Positions 6,430 to 64,000 of a stretch of 64,000 nt of DNA are shown here, one piece after another. The stretch is from IMG/VR virus record IMGVR_UViG_3300046804_003469, positions 1-64,000 of that record; one strand, written 5' to 3'. A model generated the notes under the pieces. That model was not told the origin of the DNA and did no database searches. It saw nothing but the letters and a program-made list of their open reading frames with translations. Numbering within the stretch: position 1 is the stretch's first letter; the number at the start of each line of letters is the position of its first letter. The position numbers and the translations under genes are program-made.

Positions 6430-7107
6430 ATGGAAAACACTAACAAATGCGGTATGTTTGAAAACATTGAAATACCTTCTAATATTGAGAGAATCTATAT
6501 TGATGTAGGTTTAGCAGCAGATGCTCCACATTCTTTGGAATGGTTATCTTCAGATCCAAATTGTTTTGTATTTGGATTTGAACCAGTTAAAGAAAATTGT
6601 GAACGAGTTTTGGAAAAAATAAAAGAACGTGGATATGAAGATAGGTATAAACTATATGAATGTGCAGTAGACAATGTAGTTGGGCAGCAAGTTAAAGATT
6701 TTTATGTAACTTGTAATTCTGAAGTTGATAGAGATCATGGTCAATCTAGTCTATTCAAATTGAAAGATGAATTGAAGCATTCTGAAGGTACAAAATATTG
6801 GGTTGAAAAGGTTGTCCCTACAGTCTGTATTAATTTGGCAGATTTTTTAATTAAAATTGATTGGGAAAGATTTAAAAATATTTCTTGTCTTAAGACAGAT
6901 ACTCAAGGAAATGATATGAATATACTCAATTCTATCGAATCTTTCTTTGATAGAATCCCATTAATCTTTTGTGAGTCGCATGTTCATGGACAATATCAGA
7001 AGGACGATGATAATCCAAATATTGTATACAATTATATGACAAGTAAAGGATATCAACTTGTAAACTGCAGTATTGATAATGCAGATCATTATTACCAAAG
7101 AGTTTAA
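6430..7107 (+). CDS. FkbM-family methyltransferase
   Basis: IDVG, GFEP, LKTDTQGND. Confidence 0.75.
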   Translation: MENTNKCGMFENIEIPSNIERIYIDVGLAADAPHSLEWLSSDPNCFVFGFEPVKENCERVLEKIKERGYEDRYKLYECAVDNVVGQQVKDFYVTCNSEVDRDHGQSSLFKLKDELKHSEGTKYWVEKVVPTVCINLADFLIKIDWERFKNISCLKTDTQGNDMNILNSIESFFDRIPLIFCESHVHGQYQKDDDNPNIVYNYMTSKGYQLVNCSIDNADHYYQRV

Positions 7108-29430: not shown

Positions 29431-29532
29431 TTATTCTTCGTATGCTTCTTTGAGAATAGAATAAATCACCCAGGCAGTTCCTACTAGTCCAATACTGAGT
29501 AAAATAATTATACTCCAAACCACATCGGTCAT
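29431..29532 (-). CDS. 33-aa single-TM microprotein (not in ORF track)
   Basis: MTDVVWSIIILLSIGLVGTAWVIYSILKEAYEE. Confidence 0.6.
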   Translation of the reverse strand: MTDVVWSIIILLSIGLVGTAWVIYSILKEAYEE

Positions 29533-29553
29533 TTTTATTTCTCTGAGTATAAA

Positions 29554-29664
29554 CTACTTTTTCTTACCACCGTTCTTTGCTTTTTTAGCAGTAGCATTAC
29601 CCTGATTTTGTTTTGGTTTATTTGCTTTCTTATTTGCTGCGCCTTTGTTTTTTGCTTTGGACAT
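29554..29664 (-). CDS. 36-aa Lys/Ala/Asn-rich basic microprotein (not in ORF track)
   Basis: MSKAKNKGAANKKANKPKQNQGNATAKKAKNGGKKK; AGAGGA RBS; minus-strand ATAAATA at 29690-29696. Confidence 0.65.
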   Translation of the reverse strand: MSKAKNKGAANKKANKPKQNQGNATAKKAKNGGKKK

Positions 29665-29725
29665 GTCTTTGTCCTCTAAGGTAACTCACTATTTATTAAT
29701 CTAAATAGTTAAAAAAACAAAGGCA

Positions 29726-30061
29726 ATGGCAGTTTTTGCGGCAAATTTAGTAATACCACAAGGAACTGATTTCGAACAATCATTTAATCTTTTTAATGAA
29801 GATGGTAGTCATTTAGTACTTACTGGATGCGCTGTTACAGCAAAACTCCGTAAGTATTATGGATCTGTAGGAGTAACTACCTTTACTTCATCTATTGTAA
29901 ATCCAACTCAAGGTGGAATTAAAATATCATTAAATGAAACACAAACTGCAAATTTGACAGTGGGTAGACATTACTATGATGTTCTGGTAACGTCTGGATC
30001 AAGCATTACTTCAAAGGTTATTGAAGGAATGATTCTAGTAGAAGGAACTGCATCTTTATAA
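29726..30061 (+). CDS. Small Ig-like/BppU-like virion-associated protein
   Basis: NLVIPQGTDF, GRHYYDVLV, KVIEG pattern common in cyanomyoviruses. Confidence 0.6.
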   Translation: MAVFAANLVIPQGTDFEQSFNLFNEDGSHLVLTGCAVTAKLRKYYGSVGVTTFTSSIVNPTQGGIKISLNETQTANLTVGRHYYDVLVTSGSSITSKVIEGMILVEGTASL

Positions 30062-30231: not shown

Positions 30232-30390
30232 GTTAAGGAATGTAACAAATCCTTAACAATTGTTCTTGCTGAAACGGGTCTAACCACCTTACTGAGACTA
30301 GGCAAGTAAAAGATGTCTCTCATACCCACAGTGGAGGGTGCTGTGGGAAATAATGTAACATCCAGAACCCCCTGGACTTTTACTTACCCT
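30232..30390 (+). ncRNA. Structured psbA 5' leader, probably PhotoRC-II-type cis-regulatory RNA
   Basis: Helices GTTAAGGA/TCCTTAAC, CTTGC/GCAAG, CCCACAG/CTGTGGG, TCCAG/CTGGA, GTAAAAG/CTTTTAC; family assigned from position only. Confidence 0.6.
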
Positions 30391-59487: not shown

Positions 59488-59561
59488 GCCTTTGTAGCTC
59501 AGTTGGATAGAGCAGGGCTTTTGTAAAGCTCAGGTCGCAAGTTCAAGTCTTGTCAGGGGCT
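59488..59561 (+). tRNA. trnT: tRNA-Thr(TGT)
   Basis: GCCTTTG/CAGGGGC acceptor stem, GGGCT-TTTGTAA-AGCTC, GCAAG-TTCAAGT-CTTGT. Confidence 0.9.
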
Positions 59562-59580
59562 TAAGTTTATAAAAACTTAT

Positions 59581-59751
59581 ATGAAAATCAATCTCTGGTA
59601 TTGCAAAGATATGAAACAATGGCGCTGGACATTGTGTGATGATTCTCGTCCTATTGTTAAGCAAGAATCAGGTCAACAACCAGATTTAAGAGATGCCATG
59701 AACGATGTTGCGAGTACCGTTGAATATATACTTGACAAACAACATAATTGA
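59581..59751 (+). CDS. 56-aa hypothetical protein (not in ORF track)
   Basis: MKINLWYCKDMKQWRWTL..QESG..LRDAMNDVASTVEY. Confidence 0.7.
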   Translation: MKINLWYCKDMKQWRWTLCDDSRPIVKQESGQQPDLRDAMNDVASTVEYILDKQHN

Positions 59752-59766
59752 TGGGATAATATATAA

Positions 59767-59836
59767 GGTGATACTGAACCAAAATCCCTTCCGTGTGACT
59801 TCTAAAACCTCCAAGAAATTGGAGGTTTTGTTGTTT
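59767..59836 (+). ncRNA. Candidate ~70-nt small RNA
   Basis: TTGACA(59732)-17-GATAAT promoter, no ATG-initiated ORF, ends in AAAACCTCCAA-gaaa-TTGGAGGTTTT hairpin. Confidence 0.5.
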
Positions 59837-59873
59837 GATAAATAATCCATAACGGAACTTACATAGAAATAAA

Positions 59874-62800
59874 ATGGGTCTTTCCAGATTAGATAATTTT
59901 CTGAAGTCAACCAGAGGTACAGTTTTATATGTTGACCCTAATAGTCTTGATGCTACAGATAGCATTGAAAATTTAGGAAACTCTTTAACTAGACCATTTA
60001 AGACTATTCAAAGAGCCCTGATCGAAGCAGCAAGATTTTCATATCAACAAGGATTTAATAATGATAGATTTGGTAAGACCACTATCATGTTATATCCAGG
60101 AGAACATATTGTAGATAATAGACCTGGATGGATACCAAATGCTTCTTCTTTTGTGTTGAGAGATGGTACAACCTCAACAGATTTTACTGCGTGGAATAAT
60201 ATTACAAATTTTGATTTAACAACATCAAATAATGCCCTTTATAAACTAAACAGTATTCATGGTGGTGTAATTATACCAAGAGGTTGTTCTATTGTTGGTA
60301 TGGATCTTAGAAAAACTAAGATTCGTCCAACTTATGTTCCAAACCCAGCAAATGATTCCATTGAAAGATCCGCAATTTTCAGAGTAACTGGTGGTTGCTA
60401 TTTCTGGCAGTTTAGTATTTTTGATGCAGATCCAAACTCAATCTGTTTTAAAGATTATACATCTAATACTTTCTTACCTAATTTTTCTCACCATAAACTT
60501 TCCGTATTTGAATATGCGGATGGATATAATCCTGTTTATATTGCTGATGACTTTTTAGCATATTCAGATACCCGCACTGATCTGGATATGTATTATGAAA
60601 AAGTTGGTATCGTTTATGGACAAGCAACAGGAAGAGCAATTACTCCAGATTATCCTTCCACTCTTGTTGATATTCAACCAGTTATTGATGAATATCAAAT
60701 TGTTGGTTCTAGAGGATCTACTGTAGGAATTACCAGTATAATCTCTGGCGATGGAGTAAATGCTACCACAACAATTACAGTAACGACAGATACAGCATTA
60801 CCTGCAATTAATGTCGATACGCCAATTCAAATACTGGGTGTTGGATCTCCTGGTTATGATGGTCAATATGTTATAAATCAAGTTGTAAATCCATATACCA
60901 TAAAATACTTAGTTCCAACAGTTCCAACTGTAGCAAGACCAAGTTCTTTAGGGGCAACTCTTAATATTGCTGTAGATACAGTAAATTCTTCATCTCCATA
61001 TATTTTCAACGTTTCATTAAGATCTGTCTATGGAATGTGTGGAATAAATGCAGATGGCAGCAAAGCCACTGGATTTAAGAGTATGGTTGTTGCTCAATTC
61101 ACTGGAATTGGACTACAAAAAGATGATAATGCCTTTGTTCGATACAATTATTCTACAGGACAATATGAAGATTCTACATCAATAGTTAATCTTCATAGCG
61201 ATTCAAAGGCAGTATTTAAACCATCATATGAAAATTTCCATATTAAAGCATCTAATAATGCATATTTACAGTTAGTTTCTGTATTTGCTATTGGTTTTGC
61301 AAATCACTTTGTTGTTGAATCTGGTGGTGATTTTTCAATTAATAATTCAAACTCTAACTTTGGTTCTAAATCTTTAGTAGCATCTGGATTTAGAGATAAT
61401 TCATTTCCTCAAGATGATATTGGATATGTAACCCATATTATTCCACCAAAACAAATTGAAGCATCGGAAGTTAATTTAGAATATGACGCAATTGATGTAG
61501 CACTTACTGTAGGTGTTGGTAATACTAGTAGATTATATCTTTATGGGGAAAATAATTTTGGTGATCCACCACCAGCAGTTATTGATGGTTATAGAATCGG
61601 TGCAAGGTCTAATGAAAAAATTTATGTGCAAGTTTCGCAAGGAGGTGAAACTCAAACATATTCATCACGCATTATCATGCCAGATACTGCGTTTACATAT
61701 GTTCAAACATCATCTCAAAAAATTGCATTTGTAAACAAACAAAGTGTTACAAATCTTGTTGGACTTGGAAATAGCATTTCTAATAATGTTATTACTTTTT
61801 CATATCCACACCAATTTTTAAATGGCGAATCAATTCGTATTTTAAGTGATGATGGTCACTTACCAGATGGCATAACTCCAAATGAAGTATATTATGCAAT
61901 TACAACTGGATTAAATATTGATCAGATTAAAGTCGCTCAAACTTTAAGTGATGCTATTAATGGTCAAGCAATTGACATTAATGCTCAAGGAGGTAATTTA
62001 TACGTTGTAAGTAGAGTATCTGATAAAAATTCTGGAGATTATGGTCATCCAGTTCAATGGGATGCTACAAATAACAACTGGTACATTAATGTAAGTACTG
62101 TTGCGGAAAATGAAATTTATTCCTTAATCACTAATTTGGGAGTTGCAAACTTAGGTAACGCAACACCTAGAACTTATATTAAAAGAGTACCTGATAGTAG
62201 AGGATTAATTGATACAATTTATAGATTGAGATATGTTATACCAAAAGATTCTTCGGTAACTGCAAGACCACCTCTTGATGGATATATCTTACAGGTATCT
62301 AATAATGTTATTGGTGCTGGCACGTCAGAAATACAAAAATATTTTAATCCAAATAATGCAACATTATCTAGATCAACAGACTTAAGAAATCCTAGTTTTA
62401 TTTCTGGAGCATTCTGGTATGGTGGTTATGCATTTATCAATACAGAGTTACCACATAGATTATCATTAGGATCTATTGTTCAGATATCAAATGTAAAGAG
62501 TACAGGAAATCCAACTGGAACTTATGGTCTTGGTTTTAATAATGTATTCCAAGTTGTTCAAATTTCAAACGCTAAGCAATTTACAGTTATTCTTACGATA
62601 CCTCCAGGTACTTTTACAAATAATACTTCTTCTAGAGATTCAAGTCTTCCATATTTCCAGAGAAAATCAACTTATGGAACTTATCAAATTTATAGAAGTT
62701 CTGAAATTAAAAAATATATTCCTTCCATTCAAGATGGTGTTTATCATTTAATTATTACAAATTCTTCAAACTCACCAACTGTTACACCATTCAATAACTT

Positions 62801-64000
62801 AAAATTCTCACAACCAATTCAAAATCTTTATCCACAAACAAATAGAGATAATCCATCATCAGATCCAAATCCATCACAATGTTATGCAGTATCTGATCAA
62901 ATTGGTAGAGTTGTTATTAATGATCCTCAAAATAGCATCAGTAAGGAATCTCTTGCAAGAGGATTATATGATGTAAATGTTGCTTTTGCTATCACGGACA
63001 TTTCCACAAAAACCACATATAATGATCATATATTTTACACAGCGATTGATCATGGACTTTCTGGTATTACATCAGTAAGTATTTTATCTGGAGGAAGTAG
63101 TTATGTTCCAGGAACTTATTATAATGCAAGCCTTGTTGGTATTGGAACTTCTGTAACTGGCTCAAATGCATCTGCATTAGTTGTAGTTAATGCTTCTGGA
63201 AATGTTTCAAACGTCCAAATTATGGATGGTGGTAGTGCTTATGGCATAGGAAATACTTTATCAGTTACAGGTATAGGAACTGCAGGTTCTCCAGGATCTG
63301 GTGCAGTTGTACAAGTAACTAGTATTATAGATCCAACTAATGATACCTTGTCCATTCTTGGTATTAGTAGTTTTGCATTCTTAAATTATAATACTCTGTA
63401 TAGAATTACAGGAGTAGATGTTGGAAAACCAAAAGAAATTAATGTAAAATCATCTGAAATAATTACTGGAATTACGACTTTAGTTCTTGGTACTGGAGTT
63501 GTACAAACTGCGGGTGTTTCTAATGCTGGAAAATCCATAGGAGTATCTTCATTAACTTATGATAGAATAACAGGAATTTCTACATTAAACTTTACAAATG
63601 CTCATGGATTTAAAGTTGATAATAAGATTAGACTTTCTGGATGTGATGATACATTCTTTGAGTCTAAAGATTATATTGTTAAGAGAGTAAATAATTTATC
63701 ATCTATTTCTATTAATACTGGTATTACTACAGTTGCAGTTTCTACTGGTGGAACTTCAATTTATGCTTTAAGACATTCATTCTCATCGTATGGAGGTGAT
63801 GTTGATACTGATAATGAAAATACTTCTGGTCGTATTATTCCTGCATATGGTGGATCTACAACATTATTAACTCAAACAGTTCTTTCGACAACATCAGATA
63901 GCGTTGCATTTGTAATTACTGATGCTGTACAATCAGGATTAAAAATTGGTGATTATCTATCAATTAATGATGAAATTGTTAGAATTAGACAAAACGTTAC
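59874..64000 (+). CDS. Very large virion structural/fibre protein, runs off the window
   Basis: MGLSRLDNFLKS..YVDP..RPFKTIQRALIEAARFSY..; absent from the ORF track, consistent with no stop in the window; ATAAATA at 59838. Confidence 0.85.
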   Translation, partial: MGLSRLDNFLKSTRGTVLYVDPNSLDATDSIENLGNSLTRPFKTIQRALIEAARFSYQQGFNNDRFGKTTIMLYPGEHIVDNRPGWIPNASSFVLRDGTTSTDFTAWNNITNFDLTTSNNALYKLNSIHGGVIIPRGCSIVGMDLRKTKIRPTYVPNPANDSIERSAIFRVTGGCYFWQFSIFDADPNSICFKDYTSNTFLPNFSHHKLSVFEYADGYNPVYIADDFLAYSDTRTDLDMYYEKVGIVYGQATGRAITPDYPSTLVDIQPVIDEYQIVGSRGSTVGITSIISGDGVNATTTITVTTDTALPAINVDTPIQILGVGSPGYDGQYVINQVVNPYTIKYLVPTVPTVARPSSLGATLNIAVDTVNSSSPYIFNVSLRSVYGMCGINADGSKATGFKSMVVAQFTGIGLQKDDNAFVRYNYSTGQYEDSTSIVNLHSDSKAVFKPSYENFHIKASNNAYLQLVSVFAIGFANHFVVESGGDFSINNSNSNFGSKSLVASGFRDNSFPQDDIGYVTHIIPPKQIEASEVNLEYDAIDVALTVGVGNTSRLYLYGENNFGDPPPAVIDGYRIGARSNEKIYVQVSQGGETQTYSSRIIMPDTAFTYVQTSSQKIAFVNKQSVTNLVGLGNSISNNVITFSYPHQFLNGESIRILSDDGHLPDGITPNEVYYAITTGLNIDQIKVAQTLSDAINGQAIDINAQGGNLYVVSRVSDKNSGDYGHPVQWDATNNNWYINVSTVAENEIYSLITNLGVANLGNATPRTYIKRVPDSRGLIDTIYRLRYVIPKDSSVTARPPLDGYILQVSNNVIGAGTSEIQKYFNPNNATLSRSTDLRNPSFISGAFWYGGYAFINTELPHRLSLGSIVQISNVKSTGNPTGTYGLGFNNVFQVVQISNAKQFTVILTIPPGTFTNNTSSRDSSLPYFQRKSTYGTYQIYRSSEIKKYIPSIQDGVYHLIITNSSNSPTVTPFNNLKFSQPIQNLYPQTNRDNPSSDPNPSQCYAVSDQIGRVVINDPQNSISKESLARGLYDVNVAFAITDISTKTTYNDHIFYTAIDHGLSGITSVSILSGGSSYVPGTYYNASLVGIGTSVTGSNASALVVVNASGNVSNVQIMDGGSAYGIGNTLSVTGIGTAGSPGSGAVVQVTSIIDPTNDTLSILGISSFAFLNYNTLYRITGVDVGKPKEINVKSSEIITGITTLVLGTGVVQTAGVSNAGKSIGVSSLTYDRITGISTLNFTNAHGFKVDNKIRLSGCDDTFFESKDYIVKRVNNLSSISINTGITTVAVSTGGTSIYALRHSFSSYGGDVDTDNENTSGRIIPAYGGSTTLLTQTVLSTTSDSVAFVITDAVQSGLKIGDYLSINDEIVRIRQNV

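Follow-up and report, generated by a model that had tools for sequence, protein, structure and literature searches.

A predicted small RNA of marine Synechococcus phages antisense to host tRNA-Val(CAC)

Described relatives and the present locus

Several described systems resemble parts of the element examined here. The cyanobacterial sRNA Yfr1 (Rfam RF01116) is a short RNA in which an unpaired conserved core, ACUCCUCACAC, lies between a 5' hairpin and a terminator hairpin. Phage and prophage base-pairing sRNAs and anti-sRNAs such as DicF, IpeX, and AgvB/AsxR (see PMC10690425) likewise combine a seed with a terminator and act in trans on host RNA, their targets being mRNAs or sRNAs. Phages also manipulate host tRNA pools: T4 induces cleavage of the E. 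coli tRNA-Leu that reads CUG, host tRNA degradation has been proposed to drive phage tRNA acquisition (Yang et al. 2021, cited in PMC11726456), and hosts can become resistant by tRNA loss (PMC11726456). In these cases the agent is a protein nuclease or transcriptional loss. The T4 tRNA cluster contains small stable RNAs that are not tRNAs (species 1 and 2, rnaC/rnaD), which are not known to have an antisense relation to a tRNA. Finally, RNA-RNA pairing with tRNA transcripts occurs in 3'ETS-leuZ type sponges, which pair through a spacer rather than the tRNA body, and in T-box leaders, which read the anticodon through 3-4-nt contacts in cis.

The locus studied here lies in a 64,000-nucleotide stretch (the window; positions 1 to 64,000 of IMG/VR record IMGVR_UViG_3300046804_003469) of a 215-kb phage genome. 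The original prediction described a stand-alone small RNA of about 70 nt with a good sigma70 promoter, a weak 5' stem, an open core, a terminator, and no start codon, ahead of a large gene with its own late promoter. This observation holds, as each of these features is present at the locus (Table 1), with one correction: a GTG at 59768 opens a 25-codon frame, but it has no SD and linker lengths in relatives differ by non-multiples of three in our alignment (A2), so the frame is not coding. The interpretation was only partly supported. A stand-alone, conserved phage small-RNA gene with an unpaired core is supported; the proposed anti-Shine-Dalgarno function and the analogy to Yfr1 are not. The original prediction had also offered a protein decoy as an alternative inference.

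Table 1. Features of the predicted small-RNA locus and its neighbors (window coordinates)
Coordinates (strand)	Feature	Support
59488..59561 (+)	Phage tRNA-Thr(UGU)	tRNA gene search and tRNA model; in many relatives the sRNA directly follows such a tRNA instead of having its own promoter
59581..59751 (+)	56-aa conserved phage ORF of unknown function; upstream neighbor	phrog_2818, E = 8e-29
59732..59760 (+)	Sigma70-type early promoter: -35 TTGACA (59732-59737, in the last codons of the 56-aa ORF), 17-nt spacer, extended -10 TGgGATAAT (59752-60)	11/12 match, TG present; same geometry in front of the same RNA in 61 class-A and 55 or more class-B loci
59767..59837 (+)	Predicted small RNA of about 71 nt, weak GGT/ACC 5' stem	Ends inferred: start G59767, six nt after the -10 as in relatives; end from the terminator
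59767..59776 (+)	GGTGATACTG, antisense to tRNA-Val(CAC) positions 62-71 (3' strands of the T stem and acceptor stem), one G-U	Only variable base in alignment A2 is C/T opposite a tRNA G
59777..59781 (+)	AACCA, antisense to tRNA positions 51-55, colinear with the other two blocks; T-loop complement deleted	Cofold structure
59786..59798 (+)	Core CCCTTCCGTGTGA, perfect antisense to tRNA positions 33-45 (U33, anticodon CAC, 37-38, 3' strand of the anticodon stem, start of the variable loop)	12-nt target occurs once in the 2.4-Mb WH7803 genome, inside the tRNA
59803..59836 (+)	Intrinsic terminator: 12-bp stem (59803-59830), 4-nt loop, T-rich tail	Stem sequence varies freely among relatives while pairing is kept
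59837..59844 (+)	T4-type late promoter GATAAATA of the tail-fiber gene, in conserved block GATAAATAATCCATAAC; not part of the sRNA	Invariant in four phages; NTAAATA motif downstream in about 100 of 119 class-A loci
59874..63998 (+)	Tail-fiber gene (ATG at 59874; runs off the window); downstream neighbor	Annotated as tail fiber in S-SM2, Bellamy, and SynMITS9220M01

Because promoter-like and terminator-like sites are not enriched in the region as a whole (11 found against 13 expected, and 1 against 1, respectively), the case for a gene rests on conservation, which is strong. Lack of conservation of the core in related phages had been named as grounds for rejection, but the core is exact in S-CAM1, S-CAM3, Sf-FR1, S-SCSM2R, and more than 100 metagenomic contigs. 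The pattern GATACT-N4-25-CCCTTCCGTGTG, which collects the class that includes the window (class A), is found in at least 119 IMG/VR contigs, of which about 105 share the same build of a sigma70 promoter or an upstream tRNA plus a terminator; 44 class-A loci directly follow a tRNA (Asn 35, Thr 6, Ile 2, Tyr 2). About 12 of the 119 hits, including 3' tRNA fragments (loci L012, L047, L072, and L073), and a few class-B hits (coding regions, and a real tRNA-Val gene in locus L336) are not family members. The core is invariant while terminator stems and linker vary, and although two of the sequence sets were collected by exact pattern, an unselected set shows the same picture. The 72-nt RNA folds at -21.6 kcal/mol (z = -4.0 against shuffles). 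The locus thus has its own promoter and terminator, no coding potential, and a conserved seed on a variable scaffold, as expected of a free-standing trans-acting sRNA gene, although a discrete transcript is inferred from sequence alone; the only public RNA run found to match the window has a single 177-nt contig at 59199-59375 and nothing over the sRNA, which is uninformative either way.

Complementarity to a single host tRNA

The core and the 5' block are antisense to tRNA-Val(CAC) of the host. A BLAST search of the 72-nt RNA against three host genomes missed the 13-nt match, and exact-pattern and all-tRNA comparisons were used instead. Contiguous Watson-Crick matches to WH7803 tRNA-Val(CAC) are 13 nt in the window, 14 nt in S-CAM3, 16 nt in S-SM2 and Bellamy, and 17 nt in Syn9, whereas the best match to any of the other 40 host tRNAs is 10 nt or less. 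The net predicted cofold gain of -17 to -23.5 kcal/mol is the best among 41 host and 12 phage tRNAs. The core is also the only non-tRNA site of 13 nt or more antisense to any host tRNA in the 215-kb phage genome. Other cyanophages carry differently built versions (GTGTGAAGGAAGTGCG in S-SM2, CCGTGTGAAGGAAGTG in Syn9, in which the RNA would be expected to start near 119,42x, after CATAAATA) that are antisense to other, overlapping parts of the same tRNA. In an unselected sample of 73 distinct regions upstream of tail-fiber homologs, 39 carry 10 nt or more antisense to tRNA-Val(CAC) and 36 carry 12 nt or more, while no other tRNA has more than 2 regions with 10 nt or more and none has any with 12 nt or more. 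All 40 elements (the 39 plus the window) cover anticodon positions 34-38, although their flanks differ.

These comparisons bear directly on the anti-Shine-Dalgarno and Yfr1 readings. The only part common to all versions is GUGUG(A), the complement of the tRNA-Val(CAC) anticodon loop, whereas the pyrimidine run CCCUUCC is replaced in sister versions by a purine run (GAAGGAAG); pyrimidine-rich and purine-rich versions cannot share an SD or anti-SD target. The Yfr1 model detects host Yfr1, located by a motif search, at 71.6 bits, but gives no hit on 59560-59900 at gathering score or even at E<=10, and no other Rfam family matches. The window core, CCCUUCCGUGUGA, differs from that of Yfr1, whose motif ACUCCUCACAC is present in the host copy, and its complementarity points to a tRNA, not to porin mRNAs. 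The Yfr1 core shares CACAC with the tRNA-Val anticodon loop, so that the GUGUGA of the phage RNA is complementary to part of it. As for a two-hairpin layout, the terminator hairpin is firm, while the 5' hairpin is 3 bp in the window and 5-6 bp with covarying stems in tRNA-adjacent relatives.

It remains possible, but in our view unlikely, that the element is a conventional sRNA that regulates host or phage mRNAs, or a sponge that titrates Yfr1, with its resemblance to the tRNA a by-product of descent from a tRNA fragment. Its build, a 5' or unpaired seed plus terminator hairpin, is that of mRNA-targeting sRNAs, and the class-B seed can pair with the Yfr1 core through 13 bp with two bulges (S-SM2 with Yfr1, -16.0 kcal/mol, against -17.0 for the tRNA). 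The 5' end of host Cyano-1 RNA (RF01701; UUCGUGUGAGGAGUGC), which is perfectly complementary to the Yfr1 core, also resembles the class B/D seeds (CGUGUGAAGGAAGUGC). However, two extra A residues make the phage seeds perfect for the tRNA and not for Yfr1, the window's class A has a different seed, and there is no Cyano-1 model match at the window. The window's class pairs poorly with Yfr1 (6 nt, -5.7 kcal/mol, against -19.3 for the tRNA). Furthermore, no second perfect target site exists in WH7803, no second site antisense to tRNA-Val(CAC) exists in the phage genome, and the different trimmings all keep 12-17 nt of contiguous perfect tRNA complementarity, far more than mRNA seeds need. Descent alone would not preserve that.

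Mobility, genomic context, and host distribution

The module, a seed at the predicted 5' end followed by a hairpin, moves between genomic sites and promoter classes as a unit. It is found upstream of the tail fiber, directly 3' of tRNA genes, inside tRNA arrays (class B in siphovirus S-SKS1, between tRNA-Lys and tRNA-Gly), after the capsid gene g23, and behind late promoters (Syn9, S-SM1, and Syn19). SynMITS9220M01 lacks it at the tail-fiber site but has it after g23. As with the small stable RNAs of T4, with which no sequence relation is expected, many copies are co-located, and probably co-processed, with phage tRNAs.

A cis-acting, T-box-like leader that couples read-through into the tail-fiber gene to the state of tRNA-Val is very unlikely. 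The position upstream of a gene, the terminator, and the two blocks complementary to the anticodon and the acceptor 3' strand loosely recall specifier and T-box contacts. Yet no Rfam leader model reaches threshold, the best hit being a terminator-only Phe_leader match at 23.6 bits against a 55-bit threshold; the tail-fiber gene has its own conserved late promoter after the terminator; no alternative antiterminator pairing is evident; and the module occurs where no gene follows in cis, for example inside tRNA arrays and between g23 and the tail-tube gene.

We consider it similarly improbable that the element has no function of its own, being the terminator of the upstream early operon plus a chance promoter, a decaying inverted tRNA pseudogene, or an attP-like relic. 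The lack of local enrichment of promoter-like and terminator-like sites would fit this reading, and class A' versions look like an almost complete inverted 3' half of the tRNA, which fits origin from a tRNA gene copy. On the other hand, exact cores occur in more than 200 contigs across myoviruses and a siphovirus, with dedicated promoters placed so that the seed is at the RNA 5' end. The matches are discontiguous, unlike att cores, and class B covers the 5' half of the tRNA, which att sites do not; true 3' fragments (L047 and L072) look different. Kyanoviridae are lytic T4-like phages. Neither is the element a tRNA or tRNA-like gene, as ARAGORN and the tRNA model find only tRNA-Gly and tRNA-Thr nearby.

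The target segment is invariant in Synechococcus/Cyanobium, and a 26-nt target segment is exact in 120 of 122 matching genomes of the host family; by our count it is present in 108 of 117 genomes of 2.0 Mb or more and in 14 of 84 smaller ones. Five small, low-GC genomes that we checked have tRNA-Val GAC and UAC, but no CAC was found. In pattern scans the element is present in 6 of 9 Synechococcus-isolated phages and was found in 0 of 7 Prochlorococcus-isolated phages (one-sided Fisher test, calculated by hand, about 0.01). The three negative Synechococcus phages, S-PM2, S-SSM7, and S-TIM5, showed no element with the two 10-mers used; 10-mer hits in P-SSM4, P-SSM7, P-TIM68, S-SSM7, S-PM2, and others lie in coding sequence without a promoter or hairpin and were not counted.

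A possible codon-selective brake on host translation

Codon usage suggests what such pairing might achieve. GUG makes up 58% of valine codons in the host sample (37 per 1000 codons) and 7% in the phage (4.7 per 1000), the third-largest host-minus-phage codon difference. We propose, with moderate confidence, that the locus encodes an untranslated, early-transcribed anti-tRNA sRNA belonging to a large cyanophage family. In this model, the RNA would nucleate on the single-stranded anticodon loop of tRNA-Val(CAC) and zip into one strand of the anticodon stem, in the window's class also pairing with the variable, T, and acceptor 3' strands. The tRNA would be unfolded or occluded, so that it could not decode GUG and might be handed to RNases. 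Because the C34 tRNA reads only GUG, the result would be a selective brake on host translation that leaves phage mRNAs, which are GUU/GUA-rich and served by GAC/UAC tRNAs, including the phage's own tRNA-Val(UAC), largely untouched. The likely origin is a captured, inverted piece of the host tRNA-Val(CAC) gene placed behind a promoter and then trimmed differently in different lineages. What the sequences themselves establish is the antisense relation of the core, the 5' block, and the sister versions to this one tRNA, the shared coverage of positions 34-38, the movement of the module as a unit, and the distribution of target and element in the genomes scanned; expression, physical pairing, any effect on the tRNA, the mechanism, and the origin are inferred.

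Several considerations weigh against this model. Mature tRNAs are tightly folded and modified, whereas our energies are for unmodified RNA, and the second block targets helical strands that are inaccessible in a folded tRNA. CUG and GCC show larger host-phage differences than GUG, yet no anti-tRNA element against other tRNAs was seen; a scan of 2.3 Mb of phage loci for such elements was strand-blind, dominated by the phages' own tRNA genes, and had a reversed-sequence control that is invalid for a hairpin, and is therefore uninformative. The five small genomes manage without tRNA-Val(CAC), so UAC tRNAs can presumably read GUG, which would blunt the effect. BLAST of the phage tRNA-Val(UAC) over 21 phage genomes was ambiguous, hitting other tRNAs and both sRNA-positive and sRNA-negative phages, and showed no clear co-occurrence. 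In addition, some versions sit behind late promoters, which is late for a host shut-off.

Alternatively, the RNA may pair with tRNA-Val(CAC) or its fragments to shield the anticodon loop from a host anticodon nuclease, or to disarm a host defense that uses, senses, or is primed by this tRNA. The pairing evidence is the same, and the one segment always covered, the anticodon loop, is the usual cut site of anticodon nucleases such as PrrC, RloC, and colicins. Moreover, the tRNA-Val(CAC) gene is an island or att site in hosts: RCC307 carries a duplicated 3' fragment 10.5 kb away, and viral contigs carry 3' fragments. We regard this reading as unlikely, though less so than the other alternatives, because no tRNA-Val-specific nuclease or defense system is known to us in picocyanobacteria, a tRNA held in a 13-17-bp duplex is itself unusable, and the codon-usage contrast is left unexplained.

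The family is abundant in ocean viromes and unannotated in the isolate genomes inspected. We found no description of such an RNA in Rfam or in full-text literature searches on cyanophage sRNAs, antisense RNAs, tRNA-Val, and the anticodon loop, which did not extend to the Syn9 transcriptome (PMC5029184). It is open to study in existing model pairs such as Syn9, S-SM2, and S-CAM1 on WH8109, WH8017, and WH7803, and offers a natural model for tRNA-directed antisense tools. If the pairing is real, this would be, to our knowledge, the first natural regulatory RNA whose target is a mature tRNA, a target class for which we know of no precedent. In its fullest form, which we hold only tentatively, the idea is that cyanophages of several lineages encode dedicated antisense RNAs, born from an inverted captured tRNA gene fragment, that remove the decoder of the host's main valine codon and so reprogram translation toward AT-rich phage messages. 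This would be a new way for a virus to take over translation, codon by codon and without a nuclease, with the same proposed outcome as the described cases of phage manipulation of host tRNA pools, removal of a host tRNA that reads a G-ending codon common in the host and rare in the phage, with phage tRNAs covering phage codons.

The element may also serve as a host-range marker, given its presence in most Synechococcus phages tested, the absence of hits in the Prochlorococcus phages tested, and the lack of a detected target tRNA in the five small, low-GC (Prochlorococcus-like) genomes checked. More broadly, an RNA of this kind would tie together three known features of cyanophage biology: AT-rich codon usage against GC-rich Synechococcus hosts, phage-borne tRNAs, and the dependence of infection outcome on tRNA supply, as is known for Syn9 in Synechococcus (PMC11726456).

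The predicted small RNA gene and its conservation

The window is part of a 215-kb, 34% GC T4-like cyanomyovirus genome from IMG/VR, and its closest isolates at this locus are the Synechococcus phages S-SM2, Bellamy, and SynMITS9220M01. The local gene order is tRNA-Gly, small ORFs, tRNA-Thr, a conserved ORF, the candidate RNA, and a tail-fiber gene. The original prediction placed a sigma70 promoter, a short noncoding transcript with an open core, and a terminator ahead of a gene with its own late promoter, and this observation is confirmed. The promoter is an 11/12 match with an extended -10, the hairpin with its T-run is the only terminator-like site in 2.5 kb, and the implied RNA folds with z = -4.0. 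After the terminator comes GATAAATAATCCATAAC, which is invariant in four phages and is a T4-type late promoter for the fiber gene. Because local counts of promoter-like and terminator-like sites are not above those in shuffled sequence, the reality of the element is shown by conservation and not by the consensus scan.

Features of the phage, host, and related loci (an empty cell means that no strand is given)
Location	Strand	Feature
59488-59561		tRNA-Thr
59581-59751	+	56-aa ORF of conserved phage family phrog_2818 (unknown function); its last codons (ILDK) encode the -35 box
59732 to 59760		Promoter: TTGACA (59732), 17-nt spacer, TGgGATAAT (to 59760)
59767-59837		Predicted RNA of about 71 nt
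59786-59798		Core, CCCTTCCGTGTGA
59803-59830		12-bp terminator hairpin, followed by a T-run
59874 (start)		Tail-fiber gene, more than 1375 aa
6572-6585	+	TTGGATTTGAACCA, 14 nt antisense to the T arm of host tRNA-Tyr
30254-30361	+	PhotoRC-II RNA motif (RF01717, 54.3 bits)
C1:202920-202992 and 201894-208704 of the phage genome (outside the window)		tRNA genes, in a second cluster near 202-209 kb
L141:2062-2133 (cyanobacterial locus)		tRNA-Val(CAC)
L541:1497-1566 and L539:1481-1537 (Synechococcus WH7803 loci)		Host Cyano-1 RNA and Yfr1
C1:623904 and 634373 of RCC307		tRNA-Val(CAC) gene and second copy of its 3' part, 10.5 kb apart
about 119,42x-119,47x of Syn9		Element between gp134 and gp135
about 29,530-29,740 of S-RSM4 (locus L499)	minus	CCCCTTCCGTGTG before tRNA-Gly and the tail-fiber gene
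about 60-130 nt upstream of the fiber ATG in L465-L472, L484, and L490 (tail-fiber loci lacking the sRNA)		A/T-rich element

The core is conserved, but in an unexpected way. S-CAM3 and S-SCSM2R, which are distant from the window phage, carry GG(C/T)GATACT, an A/C-rich linker, CCCTTCCGTGTG, and a terminator before their fiber genes, as do S-CAM1 and Sf-FR1. A pattern scan of IMG/VR returned at least 119 contigs, of which 61 have a sigma70-like promoter plus terminator and another 44 start directly after a tRNA gene (Asn 35, Thr 6, Ile 2, Tyr 2) and end in a terminator, while about a dozen are chance hits or tRNA fragments. The nearest relatives, S-SM2 and Bellamy, keep the promoter and terminator but have a different core, GTGTGAAGGAAGTGCG, whereas SynMITS9220M01 has nothing at this site. 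Relatives without the sRNA here (SynMITS9220M01) have lost the TTGACA motif in the last codons of the upstream ORF. In ten loci, tail-fiber homologs that lack the sRNA share a different conserved A/T-rich element (TTTTAATTCCAAAAA...GGAAAAAAA...CC...TTTTTT). Elsewhere in the window lies a PhotoRC-II RNA motif, the known cyanophage element upstream of photosynthesis genes.

Complementarity to host tRNA-Val(CAC)

The connection to a tRNA emerged from four off-family hits of the pattern scan, which were reverse complements of the 3' half of a tRNA and resembled the element beyond the bases the pattern demanded. The tRNA is cyanobacterial tRNA-Val(CAC), as called by ARAGORN, and the pattern CACACGGAAGGG...AGTATCGCC is found almost only in cyanobacteria, among them Synechococcus WH7803 and RCC307. 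In RCC307, a second copy of the 3' part of this tRNA lies near the gene, and four viral contigs (L012, L047, L072, and L073) carry 3' fragments without a whole tRNA; both look like att sites of integrating elements that use this tRNA gene.

The window core CCCTTCCGTGTGA is antisense to tRNA positions 33-45, GGTGATACTG is antisense to positions 62-71 with one G-U, and AACCA is antisense to positions 51-55. All three blocks are colinear, so the RNA is an antisense copy of the 3' half of the tRNA with the T-loop left out. The S-SM2/Bellamy core, which had looked unrelated, is a perfect 16-nt antisense to positions 23-38 of the same tRNA, an independent prediction that came true.

We examined specificity against all 41 distinct tRNAs of WH7803. 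tRNA-Val(CAC) gives contiguous Watson-Crick matches of 13-17 nt, whereas every other tRNA gives 10 nt or less. After paying for the unfolding of both partners, predicted cofolding still gains -17 to -23.5 kcal/mol, the best of 41 host and 12 phage tRNAs, and the phage's own tRNA-Val(UAC) is not among the top partners. The 12-nt target occurs once in the 2.4-Mb WH7803 genome, inside this tRNA. In the whole phage genome, apart from its 12 tRNA genes, the core is the only site of 13 nt or more antisense to a host tRNA, with the one exception of the 14-mer at 6572 against the T arm of tRNA-Tyr, for which chance has not been excluded.

To obtain an unselected sample, we fetched 80 loci by the N-terminus of the fiber protein rather than by the RNA, which gave 73 distinct upstream regions. 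Of these, 39 have 10 nt or more antisense to tRNA-Val(CAC) and 36 have 12 nt or more, while no other tRNA has more than 2 regions with 10 nt or more and none has any with 12 nt or more. Besides the two exact classes there are further builds, including TTCCTTCCGTGTGAA at the RNA 5' end; TCCGTGTGAAGGAAGT, covering the whole anticodon stem-loop; GACGATACT..CAGTGACCCAAAAAGTGTGAC, which keeps the variable/T-stem and loop complements but has lost the stem complement; and one-mismatch versions. All 40 elements (the 39 plus the window) cover positions 34-38, while the flanks differ. Thus, the pyrimidine run that was originally taken for an anti-Shine-Dalgarno core is just one of several dispensable flanks.

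Distribution among phages and hosts

The module is mobile and gene-like. The 16-mer of class B (the S-SM2 type) is present in at least 120 contigs, almost always begins 5-8 nt after a -10 box or a late-promoter motif, and is followed at once by a hairpin. Its contexts comprise 55 with sigma70 plus terminator, 24 with late promoter plus terminator, and 20 or more next to a downstream tRNA, where RNase P would make the 3' end. It lies between the major head and tail-tube genes in some myoviruses; between tRNA-Lys and tRNA-Gly in the siphovirus S-SKS1, with a C-to-U change that keeps a G-U pair; behind CATAAATA/TATAAATA in Syn9, S-SM1, and Syn19; and after g23 in S-CAM9 and in SynMITS9220M01, the phage that lacks it at the fiber site. 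In S-RSM4, CCCCTTCCGTGTG sits after a series of GC-rich hairpins with no obvious terminator, which may be a longer or differently processed version. No isolate genome inspected annotates the element. A T-box-like leader is contradicted by these non-leader contexts and by the late promoter after the terminator, and a functionless relic is contradicted by the scale and pattern of conservation.

On the host side, the 26-nt segment covering tRNA positions 23-48 is identical in 120 of 122 matching genomes, out of 201 sampled from the host family. By our count, it is present in 108 of 117 genomes of 2.0 Mb or more and in 14 of 84 smaller ones, and five small, low-GC genomes have tRNA-Val(GAC) and (UAC) but no (CAC). 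In identical two-pattern scans, a promoter-seed-hairpin element was found in 6 of 9 Synechococcus-isolated phages (Syn9, S-RSM4 (probable), S-SM1, Syn19, S-CAM9, and SynMITS9220M01), with S-PM2, S-SSM7, and S-TIM5 negative. The same scans found it in 0 of 7 Prochlorococcus-isolated phages (P-SSM2, P-SSM4, P-HM1, P-HM2, P-RSM4, P-SSM7, and P-TIM68); a one-sided Fisher test calculated by hand gives about 0.01.

Proposed role in infection

Codon usage suggests why this tRNA might be worth hitting. GUG is 7% of valine codons (4.7 per 1000) in long ORFs of the phage and 58% (37 per 1000) in a WH7803 sample, the third-largest host-minus-phage codon difference after CUG and GCC. By established decoding rules, a C34 tRNA reads only the G-ending codon, so removing it would spare GUU/GUA. 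The phage, whose 12 tRNA genes lie mostly in a second cluster and include an Ile(UAU)-type tRNA, also carries tRNA-Val(UAC), as does Syn9 (PMC11726456), and that paper shows that tRNA availability decides whether Syn9 proteins are made in Synechococcus. Cleavage of the host CUG-reading tRNA-Leu by T4 is a classical parallel.

What the sequence analysis establishes is the gene-like build, the conserved antisense relation and its specificity, the host correlation, and the codon contrast; expression, physical pairing, and mechanism are inferred from sequence alone. In the mechanism we propose, the RNA nucleates on the seven-nt anticodon loop, which is fully complementary in most versions, and then invades one strand of the anticodon stem. 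In class A, the class of the window, it would pair onward with the 3' strands of the variable, T, and acceptor regions, and decoding would be blocked or the tRNA exposed to RNases. This model has weak points, as native tRNA is folded and modified, the acceptor/T block targets helical strands, wobble reading by UAC tRNAs may buffer the loss, and some copies sit behind late promoters. Alternatively, an anti-defense role, in which the RNA shields the loop from an anticodon nuclease or disarms a tRNA-dependent system, uses the same pairing and cannot be separated computationally from this model.

An mRNA or Yfr1 target is possible for class B, which gives 13 bp with two bulges to the Yfr1 core (-16 against -17 kcal/mol for the tRNA), but it is not plausible for the class of the window (-5.7 against -19.3 kcal/mol). 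The class B seed resembles the 5' end of host Cyano-1 RNA (GUGUGAGGAGU), which is itself a perfect 11-nt complement of the Yfr1 core ACUCCUCACAC, suggesting that Cyano-1 could pair with or sponge Yfr1; the phage class B/D seeds look like this 5' end with two extra A residues.

Rfam 15 has no family at this locus, and full-text literature searches found nothing on phage RNAs antisense to tRNAs, although a Syn9 ncRNA that has been listed but not interpreted cannot be excluded. We therefore regard the element as a predicted base-pairing sRNA, a kind of regulator already known, whose proposed class of target has no known precedent. The original interpretation is partly supported, in that the element appears to be a phage sRNA, but its anti-Shine-Dalgarno target and its analogy to Yfr1 are not. 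The best-supported reading is an anti-tRNA-Val(CAC) sRNA that would cause codon-selective shut-off of the host.
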